Assembly: GCF_002571385.2 (NCBI RefSeq) | Contig: NW_019218084.1 | Span: 275,516 to 339,515 of the forward strand | Length of the DNA: 64,000 bases | Origin: Stylophora pistillata | Taxonomy: Eukaryota | Reading direction: 5' to 3' | Part shown: one piece after another, positions 13,916 to 35,247 of the stretch | Layout: every line of letters begins with the position of its first letter | Numbering within the stretch: the stretch's first letter is position 1 | Notes under the pieces: model-generated | Database searches by the model: none | Seen by the model: only the letters and a program-made list of their open reading frames with translations | What the model was told of the DNA's origin: nothing | Made by a program: the position numbers and the translations under genes

Positions 13916-16900
13916 ATGGCGGTAAACGAAGGTGACGATCTAGCACCCCTAGAACCCAAGACAGTCAACGATGGAGCAATCGTGGAATTGTTACGGAGAA
14001 GATACAACCACCACCAAATTTATGTGAGTTCAACTTCCCAGTTGAAAAAGCTTAACTGAGTCTTTTTGGCGAACCTGCTGCCTGTTCGTTTTCATTTTGC
14101 AAATCTTGCGCGCAGTAACAAGTTGTGTAACTTCTGCTCATTGAAAATCTTTTGTTAAATCTTTACTTTTTCAGACTTCCGTTGCTGATATATTGCTCTC
14201 AGTGAATCCTTTTAAAGATCTATCCATCTATGGGCCAAAGGTAACCTAGCAATATTTAGATATTGATCGTTGTTGATTCCAAGCAAGGTGGCATTCATGT
14301 CATTTGTGCGCGCATCTTTAAATTCGTACCTCTGAAGTAGACAGTACTAGTTACTGTTGGTATTCAGTGCATAGCTCGAGTGATATGAATTATTTACTTA
14401 CTGATGAAGAACGCAGATAGGGCGCTTAATTGCTGAAAAATTTACGCAGTTCAACCGATTTGACTTAAAAGAAGCAAATACGTACTACAGCTGTACGTGG
14501 TAGTTTATAGCGCGTAGAAGATTGATTTTTCGCATCATTGCTTCGCCTTGGTTTTTAATAGTTTTTGTTTGAGTAGCACAGATCGTAGATAACACAAATC
14601 TGTTTTGATTTTTAAGAGTTTAAAATTCTTTTTGTCGTCTATGCTTTTGGATTAGTGTCATATGCGTTACAATCAGCGTTGAAAACCTCTTAGACAGCGT
14701 TGTGTAAACACTAGGCATTTTTATGCAAAATCCTTAGCGAATTAATTTCTCCTTCTGAACACATCTACCGAAAGGCGATATTTCACGGTTCGTAGATCTC
14801 GAAATTTATCCTAGATTTATCACGTTTTGGCATTATATGTTATTACTCAAGCTAGAATTGATAACATATACAGCCGGCCCGGGCATTATGGCGCGTTTTT
14901 AGTGTCAAAATTCAAATCCTCCTGTCAGACTTGCTATTTTTCTATTCAAACTTCGTGTTTGACAATTCAGATACGCTATTTGTTTACTGAAACATCCATT
15001 GTTTCAATTCAAAGCAATATTTCTTCGATTCAGTCATGCGGTTTTTTTATTCAAACGTGCAATCCTTCGCTTTAAAAATGTTTTTCGACTACCCAAACAT
15101 TCAGTCATTTAATTCAAACATGCTATTGAGCATTTTAAATTTTCAATCTCGCAATTCAAAATAGTCAGTTCCGCAAGTAAAAATGCTATCTTTCTATTCC
15201 AATATGCAATTCTTTAGGNNNNNNNNNNNGCGTTGTCGCGTTGTAAACCTGTTTAGTTACCTTTTGTTATGCTAAATTTGCCATGAGTTGTAGTCGCGAC
15301 ATAAAAAGTCGCACAGCATGTGCAAACTAACTTGACATACCACATTACAATAAACGATTGTAACATACGTTTGCTGGTGACGTCTGCGTTGATTTAATGA
15401 AACAAAAATATCTCAAACGCCTGTAGATGTGAGAACATTACAGGCACATTTTCAGGCGTCTCAAAATATTACAACGTTCAGCCCCAGCTCCAAACTTTGA
15501 CTAGCGTGAGAGCAAGCCCTCATTACGAGCCCTTCAATACGAGCGTTTCTTCACCGACAAATAAGTTTTGGGCCTTGAGTAACACTAGGTGAAGAGAGGT
15601 TTGCAGGGTGTCATGCTTGTGGGTTTGAATGATTGAATTGAAGGATTCGTGTCGGAAATGACGAGTATCAGGTTCGCATTGAATAATTGAATGTTTGGAA
15701 AAGGAGTTCGAATATTTGAAGTGATGAATAGGGTTACCAAATTAAACAACTGGATGTCTCCATAGTCGAACAGCAGATCTGACCTAAAAGATTAAGCGTT
15801 GGAATGGAAGAATTGCCGGTTTGAATTGAAGAGTAGAGTGTTTGAATTGCAGAACAATTGTTTCAAAATGAAGGATTGCATGTTTCTGTTGACAAAAGGC
15901 CTGTTTGAACTGGCGAATAGTGTATTTGAATTGACAAGTAGCAGGTTTGCGATAAAGAATTGCATATTGGAATAGAAAGATAGCATTTTTACTTGCGGAA
16001 CTGACTATTTTGAATTGCTAGATTGAAAATTTAAAATGCCCAATAGCATGTTTGAATTAGATGACTGAATGTTTGGGTAGTAGAAAGACATTTTTAAAAC
16101 GAAGGATTGCACGTTTGAATAGAAAAACAGCATGACTGAATCGAAGAAATATTGCTTTGAATTGAAAACAATGGATGTTTCAGTAAACAAATAGCGTATC
16201 TGAATAGTCAAACAAGAAGTTTGAATAGAAAAATAGCAAGTCTGACACGAGGATCTGAATTTTGACACTAAAAAAAATAGGACACAACGGTGTGATTACA
16301 GTTTCGAATTACCCTTATCTCTTACCTCCCTTTCGAAAAGAAGTGTTATTTTTCATGTTTTTTAAATTTTCATTATTTTCACAAAAGCGACTCAGATTGA
16401 TGTTTTCTTATGGTAGAATCTCTTTATCTGGAAGCTTTAAGCTGCAAGAAATTTCCATAATTCTTGACAAGTCAAGATGTATAATTACTGGAATACCTGT
16501 GGTAGCCCAGTCATAAAACCTCACTACACCTTCGTTCGCAAATGTTCTTTGACCCAGAATTGACAGTTCTTCTGCTCTGTGGCTTCTAACTGTAAATGTT
16601 CGATCAAGACAGAATTGAAATACTTATTTAAACTTCTTTCGTGCGATGATGTATTGATCGGCATGGTTCAGATAATAATGTGACCAATTATAATGTAGAT
16701 AGACAACCTTTATTTTAGCACGATAGTAGTAAAAGCTATGCAGCTTATGGGGTTAATTGTGATGGATGGATGCCAGTACATTACACATAAATACCTCCCT
16801 TGTTCCACAGCATTTTGTTTACCAATACTCATATTTTACATGATTATCCTCCAGAGCAGCTAGATAAATACCCACCCGTGCCCACTTCTCTGAGGTAAAT

Positions 16901-16966
16901 AGTTCTTTTAGTATAACTACAATTTACTTTTAAATTAGTTTAATTTCAGAGCTGAGCAAAGAGTTT

Positions 16967-34600: not shown

Positions 34601-35247
34601 CTTTTCTCAGTAATCTGAAAAAAAAAAAACGCCTACTCACCAAAGACTTCTTCAAGGAATTCAAATTTGACATACTTTCCGCTTCTACCGCTCGCTTTTT
34701 GCATACCGATTTGTGTTTACTTAGAAGTTAAAATGTATATCTATCTTTATTTTCAAATCTAAGTTATATTTTTACATAACGTGTAATCCTCTTTTTTCTT
34801 CACACAACCCCACAAGCTTGTGGCTTAAAATATTATTGTGTGTGAATAAAGGTCACCTATCTATCTATCCGTCTGTCTATCTATCTACCTTATCGATCTA
34901 TCCTACTTACGATGCTACGCATTAATGATCAGTTACTTTTTGTCGAACTCAAATACTTTGTGTGGGGGAAGGTGATTAAACTTAGAGAACGATTAACACC
35001 CGGGAGTAGTTTCATAATCTTTTTCATTCTTTCTGTTTGTCAGGTTTTTGACTGGGAATCTTTCGCAAGCCTAGTTCGACATCACTGTCTGGAGCCCAAG
35101 AATTTTGATTCTGATATCGAGGAGAGGATCTTGTCGAGTACCTCGGTCTACTTCAGTTTTGTGGTAGATGGCGAAGATGACGTCAACACGCCATGTTGGG
35201 CTCAGCTTGATGTTTTGTCTGCCTTCAATCAAGCTAAAGGTCCTTGA
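13916..35247 (+). CDS. Unconventional myosin (class III/XVI-related motor, no kinase) with one IQ, Ser/Pro repeats and C-terminal SMAD MH2 domain; nonsense codon and probable frameshift in this assembly
   Basis: Exons: 13916-14023, 14175-14240, 17531-17758, 18053-18167, 18604-18656, 19081-19175, 20108-20225, 20806-20926, 21146-21217, 21923-22064, 22309-22453, 22813-22893, 23660-23821, 24507-24582, 25260-25338, 25650-25694, 26451-26523, 27481-27685, 28056-28173, 28798-28879, 29601-29692, 29898-29984, 30666-30744, 31459-31892, 32480-32622, 33188-33257, 33534-33608, 34084-34149, 35044-35247. Motifs [68 protein letters not shown]; MH2-like [41 protein letters not shown]. Tail exons around 29898-31459 are less certain. 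Confidence 0.9.
14896..16274. mobile_element. Fold-back / long-TIR element (~320-bp inverted arms built from degenerate 21-bp repeats) in myosin intron 2
   Basis: 14896-15216 is the reverse complement of ~15953-16274 with scattered mismatches. The ORF track shows the same pseudo-peptide ([29 protein letters not shown]) on both strands. N gap at 15219-15229. Confidence 0.8.
20459..20574. repeat. 56-bp exact tandem duplication
   Basis: TTCTGAGAGGTACTGGTACCCAACGATAGCATATTGGGCACCAGTTTCATTTAATG occurs at 20461 and 20517. Confidence 0.95.
21545..21842 (+). mobile_element. Degenerate copy of SINE family 2
   Basis: Similar to 39182-39479 (GTGTAAATGGG..., TATCCCATCCAAGGGG, GGGCCAC..GGCT.., GACTT). 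Confidence 0.55.
23206..23604 (+). mobile_element. tRNA-derived SINE family 1, copy B
   Basis: TAGCTCAGTTGGTAGAGC and GGTTCAAGCCC boxes, shared body with an internal deletion, tail ending in (ATTT)n. Confidence 0.85.
24241..24455. mobile_element. ~200-bp TTAA-type (piggyBac-like) MITE; related copies at ~32148-32352, 46133-46333, 49879-50082, 55730-55880, 57005-57185
   Basis: Ends AACCCTTTAACTCCCAGA and TTTGGAATTTAAGGGTT. Shared internal sequence among copies. Confidence 0.6.
30910..31075 (+). mobile_element. Penelope-like terminal remnant with hammerhead-like motif (30936-30969)
   Basis: GCT CCGACGA A GGGC TAAC GCTC GAAAC GTC AGC. Flanks are homologous to the copies at 3308 and 4021. Confidence 0.65.
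31540..31862 (+). repeat. Coding 81-bp (27-aa) tandem repeat x4 in the myosin tail
   Basis: TCCGAT(G/A)TATTCGGCCCAGACTCTCCT starts at 31551, 31632, 31713 and 31794. Unit SVSD(V/I)[22 protein letters not shown]. Confidence 0.95.
34159..34520 (-). mobile_element. tRNA-derived SINE family 1, copy C
   Basis: Reverse complement of the copy A/D head and body, with a distinct 3' tail ending in (AATAA)n. Confidence 0.85.

Follow-up and report, generated by a model that had tools for sequence, protein, structure and literature searches.

An unconventional myosin gene with an Expansion-like MH2 domain in the stony coral Stylophora pistillata

Myosins with an MH2 domain and the MH2 proteins Expansion and Rebuf

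Myosins that carry an MH2 domain appear in two surveys of the myosin family. 'Myosin III-like' proteins with a C-terminal MH2 domain were reported from Salpingoeca rosetta and Oscarella carmela, and the MH2 domain of these myosins was proposed to be the forerunner of that found in SMADs (Sebe-Pedros et al. 2014). The second survey lists class-80 (class-82 in its supplement), which is described as restricted to Ambulacraria, as well as lophotrochozoan 'orphan' myosins with an MH2 domain (Kollmar and Muhlhausen 2017). Cnidarian members are named in neither survey, but coral members are annotated in databases. Functional work on any member of this class was not found.

The MH2 domain is also found in the Drosophila proteins Expansion and Rebuf (N-alpha-MH2; PDB 4r9p), which have no motor and in which the domain is N-terminal and precedes a long basic region of low complexity. 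According to its authors Expansion does not transduce TGF-beta signals and instead acts in chitin deposition (PMC4305360), and the synthase Kkv depends on the MH2 domains of Expansion and Rebuf to translocate chitin (PMC9894549; PMC4305360). The papers searched hold no link between the myosin MH2 domain and Expansion or Rebuf.

The window analysed here is a stretch of 64,000 nucleotides from the stony coral Stylophora pistillata (NW_019218084.1, positions 275,516 to 339,515). Its positions 13916-36372 on the plus strand constitute one gene of about 32 exons that encodes an unconventional myosin whose tail contains an MH2 domain. A preliminary description, made from the sequence alone, had proposed such a fusion and mentioned similar architectures in myosin surveys. 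The fusion is real, being one spliced and transcribed unit that also occurs in other corals, echinoderms and bivalves, and the surveys do list such architectures. The architecture itself is therefore not new, and both domains are already annotated at the locus, although under the misleading names Myosin-IIIb and unconventional myosin-XVI-like. The class does however extend to stony corals, whereas the 2017 survey gave it a range of Ambulacraria and lophotrochozoans. The features of the gene are as follows.

13916..14023, +, exon 1, start codon and motor N-terminus; translation ends HHQIY; aligns to residue 1 of Oculina P0028, junction fit
14175..14240, +, exon 2, motor; junction fit to Oculina P0028; gap 15219-15229 in next intron
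17531..17758, +, exon 3, motor, P-loop GDSASGKT; junction fit; Pfam Myosin_head match in genome scan
18053..18167, +, exon 4, motor, switch I NRNSSRFA; fits Oculina orthologue
18604..18656, +, exon 5, motor; fits Oculina orthologue
19081..19175, +, exon 6, motor; junction peptide contiguous with Oculina P0028; gap 19363-19439 in next intron
20108..20225, +, exon 7, motor; fits Oculina orthologue
20806..20926, +, exon 8, motor; fits Oculina orthologue
21146..21217, +, exon 9, motor; fits Oculina orthologue
21923..22064, +, exon 10, motor, carries in-frame stop; fits Oculina orthologue
21964..21966, +, in-frame TAA within exon 10; CAA (Gln) in two other coral transcripts; single copy in assembly
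22309..22453, +, exon 11, motor, switch II LDVFGFE; matches XP_022798205.1
22813..22893, +, exon 12, motor; XP_022798205.1 maps exactly
23660..23821, +, exon 13, motor; XP_022798205.1 maps
24507..24582, +, exon 14, motor; XP_022798205.1 maps
25260..25338, +, exon 15, motor; XP_022798205.1 maps
25650..25694, +, exon 16, motor, loop 2 region; XP_022798205.1 maps
26235..26248, no strand, assembly gap, probably hiding a coding exon of about 30 nt; XP_022798205.1 residues 223-232 unplaced
26451..26523, +, exon 18, motor; XP_022798205.1 maps
26964..27019, +, exon 19, motor; XP_022798205.1 maps
27536..27685, +, exon 20, motor, FIRCIKPN; Myosin_head match in genome scan; XP_022798205.1 maps
28056..28173, +, exon 21, motor end; Pfam Myosin_head stops at XP_022798205.1 residue 368
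28798..28879, +, exon 22, neck, first half of IQ motif; XP_022798205.1 maps
29601..29692, +, exon 23, neck, second half of IQ motif; XP_022798205.1 maps
29898..29984, +, exon 24, linker; RNA junction 29984>30666
30666..30744, +, exon 25, linker; RNA junctions on both sides in runs X2, X8 and X24
31459..31892, +, exon 26, Ser/Pro-rich linker with 27-residue (81-nt) tandem repeats; RNA junctions 30744>31459 and 31892>32480
32480..32622, +, exon 27, MH2 exon 1; Pfam MH2 match alone; RNA junctions
33188..33257, +, exon 28, MH2 exon 2; RNA junctions
33534..33608, +, exon 29, MH2 exon 3; Pfam MH2 match alone; RNA junctions
34084..34149, +, exon 30, MH2 exon 4; RNA junction; XP_022798205.1 maps
35044..35239, +, exon 31, MH2 exon 5, short acidic L3 loop, TPCW; donor at 35240; RNA junction
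35840..36372, +, exon 32, basic helical tail, two RKxWAK motifs, stop codon; RNA junction 35239>35840; 100% to XP_022798205.1 residues 806-982

Motor, MH2 domain and tail

The annotated protein of the locus, XP_022798205.1 (P0029), is a 100% match to the exons from 21988 to 36369. The gene encodes a motor followed by a single IQ motif, a linker rich in Ser and Pro whose repeats are 27 residues long (period 81 and 4.3 copies by TRF), the MH2 domain and, last, a 177-residue tail. Pfam Myosin_head (PF00063) matches the Oculina orthologue P0028 with 575.7 bits over profile positions 2-678 and XP_022798205.1 with 256.6 bits for the C-terminal half of the motor. The motor exons of the window also match in a genome scan, and kin score between E 1e-139 and 1e-214. 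The ATPase motifs, the P-loop GxxxxGKT, switch I NxNSSR and switch II DxxGxE, are present in exons 3, 4 and 11.

The protein is a kinase-less and ankyrin-less member of the myosin III/XVI supergroup, the nearest named classes by both tree and score. Unlike myosin III, which has an N-terminal kinase, it shows no kinase hit and its motor starts at residue ~7-16, and unlike myosin XVI it has no Ank hit in place of the N-terminal ankyrin repeats. In the motor tree the coral clade lies inside the III/XVI/MH2 group and joins the MH2 myosins of echinoderms and bivalves with an SH-aLRT of 79.9 (best tree); the coral branch is long, and the AU test does not reject a single clade of all MH2 myosins (p-AU 0.54). 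The stem branch of the coral motors measures 1.21 changes per site and their Pfam scores lie ~100 bits below those of echinoderm and bivalve kin, and it is therefore possible, judging from these sequences, that motor activity has been altered or lost in corals.

Class-80 and the lophotrochozoan orphan myosins share with the coral protein the succession of motor, neck and MH2 domain in the tail, and the echinoderm and bivalve members also share a tail after the MH2 domain with two RKxWAK motifs. They differ in that the coral motors, which are cnidarian, are far more divergent; in corals the YSW motif found in the tails of echinoderm and bivalve members is missing, and the linker is rich in Ser and Pro and built of tandem repeats. 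The S. rosetta and O. carmela proteins, compared by their published description, have the same domain combination and belong to the same broad motor group.

The preliminary description had read SMAD motifs in the spliced exons, and the domain call is borne out by both profile and fold. Pfam MH2 (PF03166) matches XP_022798205.1 with 78.1 bits (E 1.2e-21, profile 2-171 of 174) against a cut-off of 25, and the MH2 scores of this protein and its kin span 78-100 bits. MH2 exons 1 and 3 match singly and in order, with E 0.012 (profile 2-37) and E 0.0044 (profile 65-89), at 16.3 and 17.7 bits. An AF2 model of the 78%-identical MH2 domain of a coral transcript (pLDDT 85.5) has the MH2 fold, and Foldseek places it closest to Expansion 4r9p (TM 0.81), followed by SMAD3, SMAD2 and SMAD4 (TM 0.75-0.81 overall).

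Sequence comparison indicates that the coral domain is of the Expansion/Rebuf kind and not of the SMAD kind. In phmmer searches against the PDB the coral domain scores 70.4 bits with Expansion and at most 35.7 with SMADs, and the bivalve-type domain scores 87 and at most 42.2, with an overall SMAD range of 31-42 bits. The L3 loop of the coral domain, DGEDDVN, is acidic, has the same length as that of Expansion and is 6 residues shorter than those of the coral's own SMADs (10 residues shorter than that of its divergent fourth SMAD-like domain). The hallmark of the Expansion domain, its N-alpha helix, is not apparent in the coral protein. The bivalve-type member can be aligned to the end of this helix (ILAKWKEI versus VLDKWTQI); at this place 6 residues are deleted in corals, and their lead-in is acidic and unstructured. 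The greater closeness of the myosin domain to Expansion than to SMADs is relevant to the idea that the MH2 domain of SMADs originated in a myosin tail (Sebe-Pedros et al. 2014).

The MH2 domain is not terminal. It is followed by the 177-residue Lys/Arg-rich tail, whose two RKxWAK motifs have an invariant Trp in 20 sequences from three phyla. The AF2 model of the tail shows helices (pLDDT 65-91) with a disordered middle. This conserved basic tail is uncharacterised.

It is considered likely that the locus is jointly explained as one gene for a myosin of the III/XVI supergroup with an Expansion-type MH2 adaptor, a basic tail and a role unrelated to SMADs. The motor, in which Walker A, switch I and switch II are all present, would move or anchor the protein on actin, the MH2 domain would bind a partner protein as an adaptor, and the basic helices of the tail may place the protein at the membrane or on actin. 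Such a protein would act outside the SMAD pathway.

Alternative readings of function and frame

The kinship of the MH2 domain shifts the functional guess from TGF-beta signalling towards chitin export, the only studied role of this domain type. The myosin could be a cofactor of chitin deposition that does on actin what Expansion and Rebuf do in flies, tying cortical actin to chitin synthase or to some related machine for apical polysaccharide export, with Expansion and Rebuf as motor-less descendants or siblings of the class. This more specific proposal is tentative and on balance doubtful. It is favoured by the closeness of Expansion among solved structures, by the common short L3 loop, by the end of the N-alpha helix in the bivalve-type member and by the requirement of the fly domains for translocation by Kkv. 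In a published classification (Kollmar and Muhlhausen 2017, supplement) the lophotrochozoan myosin-chitin-synthase fusions and the MH2 myosins are sister classes, and the latter would then be the separate-protein counterpart of the former; the fused motors have been placed with myosins III and XVI (Zakrzewski 2014). Stony corals are reported to carry chitin-synthase genes (PMC10216261), and the S. pistillata genome contains at least three chitin-synthase-like loci. The nearest ESM Atlas clusters are arthropod MH2-only proteins (score 0.90), which is a lead only.

Against the chitin proposal, the evidence for a link to chitin in corals is indirect, and the CM2 motif (DDPYYCGL and RARVPNFVK) was not found after the coral MH2 domain when the published alignment and the tail alignment were compared by eye; the coral NPFLYGKK resembles it only loosely and is not conserved in echinoderm and bivalve kin. 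Echinoderms are classically held to lack chitin. They keep an MH2 myosin, yet go unmentioned in the chitin-synthase surveys consulted.

A different alternative concerns the frame of the motor, in which the preliminary description had overlooked an in-frame stop and a probable hidden exon. Two assembly gaps, at 15219-29 and 19363-439, fall within introns, as the exons on either side of each join with nothing missing relative to the Oculina orthologue. A third at 26235-48 falls between exons 25650-25694 and 26451-26523, which are compatible in phase (2 nt + 1 nt), and it probably hides a mini-exon of ~10 codons, since residues 223-232 of XP_022798205.1 have no counterpart in the letters read. 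Exon 10 contains a TAA that differs by a single base from the CAA of two other corals. The motor-to-MH2 frame is therefore not continuous as assembled, being broken by this stop and lacking the ~10 codons at the third gap, and the assembly as it stands does not encode a full-length motor-MH2 protein.

The gene could thus be a recent pseudogene in S. pistillata, or yield a headless product from Met 21988 (half a motor, IQ, MH2 domain and tail) that cannot hydrolyse ATP and serves as a passive scaffold. The TAA sits in the only copy of exon 10 in the assembly, and the RefSeq model, which begins at Met 21988 downstream of it, is exactly this truncated product. The other 30 exons read are however open, exons 1-9 ahead of the stop among them, and the P-loop and switch I are kept. 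The stop is only one base away from a coral Gln codon, and the 3' exons show good splicing and expression. An old loss therefore accounts for these points less well than an error or a heterozygous allele, and a recent pseudogene or a headless product is judged unlikely. With all other exons intact, the TAA most likely represents an assembly error or a null allele.

The preliminary description had suggested that the myosin could tether SMADs or receptors to actin, its MH2 domain binding R-SMADs, SMAD4 or TGF-beta/BMP receptors. The true MH2 fold (TM 0.75-0.80 to SMAD2/3/4), the retained motifs WCKI, IDG, RIGLG, IGKGV and TPCW and the canonical SMADs of the S. pistillata genome as potential partners would agree with this suggestion. 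It is nevertheless unsupported and very improbable. SMADs (MH1-linker-MH2) share the fold and the PF03166 match above threshold but have a basic, full-length L3 loop (GWGAEYRRQ...TPCW), the site of the basic residues for phospho-tail and receptor contacts, whereas that of the myosin is the short acidic one. No Pfam hit to MH1 was obtained in P0028, P0027 or XP_022798205.1, and an SSXS C-terminal end is absent, 177 residues following the MH2 domain. The R-SMAD-like MH2 domains of S. pistillata are only 27-29% identical to that of the myosin and the divergent fourth one 19%, and the sequence is much nearer to Expansion, which is reported not to transduce TGF-beta.

Splicing and continuity of the gene

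RNA evidence joins the 3' half of the gene into one transcript. The junctions 29984>30666, 30744>31459, 31892>32480, 32622>33188, 33257>33534, 33608>34084 and 35239>35840 were found in raw reads and in the RNA contigs of two runs that come from separate studies (three studies and runs overall: X2, X8 and X24), with a strand pattern that fits plus-strand RNA. The remaining junction, 34149>35044, is crossed by a single RNA contig in X2 and by another in X8, and it agrees exactly with the annotated protein. The RNA comparison covered the exons downstream of the motor; expression of the 5' half (exons 1-21) rests on gene models and orthologues.

That the MH2 exons form a separate downstream gene, with the myosin ending before 32480, is hardly credible because in all three runs the chain of RNA junctions leads from the neck exons by way of 31459-31892 to 32480, single transcripts of a related coral carry both domains and the same architecture recurs in three phyla. 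Nothing was found in favour of this idea; low-depth unspliced contigs lie over parts of some introns. In that related coral four full-length transcript contigs hold motor, MH2 domain and tail in one open frame.

The five MH2 exons had been read correctly as in frame, with translations as quoted, AG/GT borders and consistent phases, and the RNA splices them as written. The predicted path from 29692 to 32480 through 31459-31892 also stands in that RNA links these points, but it passes through two additional exons, 29898-29984 and 30666-30744, the second of which was missing from the earlier exon chain and is flanked by RNA junctions on both sides. RNA contigs continue upstream from the linker and MH2 exons into those of the neck. 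At the other end, a stop at 35245-47 had been taken as the end of the gene, but splicing from 35239 to 35840 removes this GP-stop (35240-35247) and the true stop codon lies at 36370-36372.

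Gene structure and transcription

The locus at 13916-36372 (+) is a real gene of about 32 exons encoding a myosin motor, a repeat-containing linker, an MH2 domain and a basic tail, and the MH2 domain call made in the preliminary description is correct. The window has a G+C content of 38.8% and is drawn from the 398 Mb assembly of the stony coral Stylophora pistillata. The RefSeq protein of the locus, XP_022798205.1 (P0029, named 'unconventional myosin-XVI-like'), is 100% identical to the window exons across 21988-36369. Its exact map supplies the exon borders from 21923 onwards, and the placement of exons 1-10 follows from fitting their junctions to the Oculina orthologue. 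The five exons of the MH2 region translate as had been described, with AG acceptors in five of five, GT donors in four of five and compatible phases.

RNA of three studies (two poly(A) contig runs and one raw-read run) was aligned to 29892-35885. Seven junctions are present in both contig runs and in the raw-read run, with 4-13 raw junction reads each: 29984>30666, 30744>31459, 31892>32480, 32622>33188, 33257>33534, 33608>34084 and 35239>35840. Among the junctions listed 34149>35044 is absent; one contig in each of the contig runs X2 and X8 covers 32480-32620 together with 35044-35237, and the exact P0029 map gives exon borders at 34149 and 35044. First mates map to the minus strand, which is what most types of stranded library give for + strand RNA. 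Contigs containing 29897-29982 extend upstream by 98 and 175 letters, which are read as the putative neck exons 29601-29692 and 28798-28879, both of which lie outside the RNA-aligned stretch. The sole break in the contig chain falls at the tandem repeats within the single exon 31459-31892, where raw-read depth is continuous. A related coral provides four transcript contigs of ~4.1 kb, found in four samples, in which motor, MH2 and tail share one 1261-residue frame. A separate downstream MH2 gene is excluded by the junction chain and by these transcripts, in which motor and MH2 occur together.

The path from 29692 through 31459-31892 into 32480 had been proposed from the sequence. The junctions on either side of the repeat exon (30744>31459 and 31892>32480) were found and the linkage of 29692 to 31459 holds, but not as a direct step, as exons 29898-29984 and 30666-30744 intervene. 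The GP-stop that had been taken to end the last exon (35240-35247) proved to be intronic, with the donor at 35240 and the acceptor at 35839. The 35239>35840 splice removes it and the reading frame continues across 35840-36369 to a stop codon at 36370-36372, so that the MH2 domain is internal to the protein. Low-depth RNA contigs at 35494-35867, which run without a break from the 3' part of the last intron into the tail exon, may reflect unspliced precursor RNA or minor initiation from an internal site. The frame 35821-36372 is given by ORF callers as a separate 183-residue protein (P0156).

P0016, a GenBank model from Acropora cervicornis named 'Myosin-IIIb', lacks the first two MH2 exons and the motor N-terminus. 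This looks like a prediction error, because P0026, a transcript of an Acropora-like coral, has both missing parts; the two exons together measure 213 nt in the window, a length whose omission preserves the frame. On the opposite strand at 31364-31864 (-), a 166-residue ATG frame antisense to the repeat exon mirrors its Ser/Pro-rich tandem repeat, and is ruled out as a gene since the RNA comes from the + strand. An Rfam search of 29000-36600 gave no match.

An Expansion-type MH2 domain

The exons were profile-searched singly, whereas the domain as a whole was judged on the natural sequences P0029, P0028 (the Oculina orthologue), L009 (a transcript of another coral), L014 and L015. The identity of the domain is borne out by Pfam, as MH2 is the only family matched by exon 1 (E 0.012, profile 2-37) and exon 3 (E 0.0044, profile 65-89), with colinear profile positions. 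P0029 scores 78.1 bits against MH2 (E 1.2e-21, profile 2-171 of 174, cut-off 25) and its orthologues from Oculina, an Acropora-like coral and other corals reach 81-87 bits. AlphaFold2 was run with a 23-row alignment on the MH2 of L009, which is ~78% identical to the window across the MH2 exons. It gave a model (pLDDT 85.5, pTM 0.81) for which Foldseek finds MH2 folds. The first-ranked PDB structure is the N-alpha-MH2 of Drosophila Expansion (4r9p, TM 0.81, rmsd 2.3), followed by SMAD3, SMAD2 and SMAD4 (TM 0.75-0.80).

In sequence the coral MH2 scores 70.4 bits against Expansion versus at most 35.7 for any SMAD, and the bivalve-type MH2 scores 87 versus 42.2 bits, with a match that reaches the end of the N-alpha helix. 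Compared with the coral's own three R-SMAD-like MH2 domains, the L3 loop of the myosin MH2 is six residues shorter and reads DGEDDVN where SMADs have GWGAEYRRQ/HRQ; in a published alignment Expansion has a short L3 loop of the same length. Neither an MH1 domain nor an SSXS end was found in the myosin protein. The earlier suggestion that the protein could tether SMADs or receptors to actin is therefore without structural basis, given the missing MH1 and SSXS, the short acidic L3 loop and the far closer likeness to Expansion, and an Expansion-type reading should take the place of the SMAD-pathway one. Expansion and Rebuf are Drosophila proteins whose MH2 is needed for chitin translocation by the synthase Kkv (PMC9894549, PMC4305360), with no TGF-beta transduction in the trachea according to their authors (PMC4305360). 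Searches for Expansion-like proteins with MH2 fragments returned coral pieces only, or nothing.

Relationship to other MH2 myosins and proposed role

The motor carries Walker A (GDSASGKT), switch I (NRNSSRFA) and switch II (LDVFGFE) motifs. Neither a kinase nor an ankyrin domain was found in the protein by profile search, and the database names are therefore misleading. A maximum-likelihood phylogeny of 55 motors recovers the corals as one clade (100% support), borne on a very long stem (1.21) and nested in a group with myosin III, myosin XVI and the MH2 myosins of echinoderms and bivalves. In the best tree the corals join these last (support 79.9), and the AU test does not reject one clade uniting all MH2 myosins (p-AU 0.54).

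The earlier remark that phylogenomic surveys list myosins with an MH2 domain is correct (Sebe-Pedros et al. 2014; Kollmar and Muhlhausen 2017). In the former, S. rosetta and O. carmela are reported to have myosin III-like proteins carrying MH2 at the C-terminus, and MH2 is proposed to have first arisen on a myosin (Sebe-Pedros et al. 2014). The latter defines class-80 as the MH2 tail class, confined to Ambulacraria with related annelid and mollusc orphans, and its supplement places the MH2 class as sister to the class 36 chitin-synthase myosins (Kollmar and Muhlhausen 2017). No cnidarian member is named in the available parts of the two surveys. The architecture is thus already catalogued and the cnidarian member is what is added here; gene models from Stylophora, Acropora, Oculina and Desmophyllum can already be found in the databases.

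A single clear IQ motif ([11 protein letters not shown]) follows the motor; next is a Ser/Pro-rich region containing 27-residue repeats (4.3 copies, period 81 nt), over which P0155, a transcript-derived protein of the same 90%-identity cluster, is shorter. The tail comprises 177 residues with a net charge of +17 and contains the motifs RKAWAR and KKVWAK, whose tryptophans do not vary among 20 coral, echinoderm and bivalve sequences. AlphaFold2 models the two ends of the tail as helices and its middle as disordered, without a globular fold, and no Pfam family matched. A motif in the tail resembling CM2, which follows the MH2 in Expansion and Rebuf, was rejected as it is not conserved.

The protein would act as an actin-based motor or tether, probably single-headed as no coiled-coil stretch was noted in the neck or linker. 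Its Expansion-type MH2 may recruit a partner protein, and the basic tail helices could bind membrane or actin. The most specific guess, an improbable one in our estimation, is that the MH2 myosin acts with chitin synthase at the apical cortex. The kinship of its MH2 with Expansion and the reported placing of MH2 myosins as sister to chitin-synthase myosins point this way, and the S. pistillata genome has chitin-synthase-like loci, C675, C1321 and C443 among them. Against it, the CM2 motif is absent from the myosin tail, and the chitin-synthase surveys consulted make no mention of echinoderms, which retain an MH2 myosin. Within the searchable literature the terms myosin, MH2 domain and chitin synthase occur together only in the two myosin surveys, and no paper there connects the MH2 of a myosin with Expansion.

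Flaws in the reference and neighbouring features

The reference sequence is flawed at two places, one stop and one gap. Exon 10 (21923-22064), reading ...SVNLAN[18 protein letters not shown], has an in-frame TAA at 21964-66. The codon is CAA in two other coral transcripts, and the residue at this site is Glu in Oculina and Asp in the echinoderm and bivalve proteins compared. The assembly holds a single copy of exon 10, and a JGI metagenome scan for the site gave 0 matches. The RefSeq model begins at the next Met (21988), and the GenBank model PFX20835.1 (P0153, 1248 residues) joins 21217 to ~21967, so that 14 conserved residues are deleted. All the remaining read exons are open, with P-loop and switch I intact ahead of the TAA; judged from the sequence, the TAA is read as an assembly error or a null allele, not an old loss.

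The gaps at 15219-29 (between exons 14175-14240 and 17531-17758) and 19363-439 (between exons 19081-19175 and 20108-20225) are intronic, because the flanking junction peptides abut without loss relative to the orthologue. The gap at 26235-48, flanked by phase-compatible read exons, probably hides an unread mini-exon of ~30 nt, since residues 223-232 of P0029 match nothing in the read sequence from 25694 to 26451 and an Acropora protein also has this short segment.

Several further features lie within the window:
6766-10430 (-), chitobiase-like gene, head-to-head with the myosin and ~3.5 kb from its start codon
30890-31090 and 34210-34690, intronic repeats
38220-39131 (+), long open frame downstream of the myosin
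40391-41416 (+), long open frame downstream of the myosin
52903-54477 (+), long open frame downstream of the myosin
62642-63391 (+), long open frame downstream of the myosin

The four downstream frames (249-524 residues) have no Pfam match. Two long open frames of the chitobiase-like gene match Glyco_hydro_20 (E 2e-33) and CHB_HEX, the chitobiase carbohydrate-binding domain (E 6e-15). In the 10 kb upstream of the Oculina orthologue a retrotransposon is present and no such gene was found, and the pairing may therefore be incidental. Elsewhere in the S. pistillata genome, another myosin motor gene (G000:C443:102780-110202, -) lies ~16 kb from a chitin-synthase-like exon (126365-126643, +) on the opposite strand of the same contig. 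The intronic repeats show RNA depth thousands of times the exon level, on both strands and with many variant letters and loose ends, and are presumably dispersed transcribed repeat elements.
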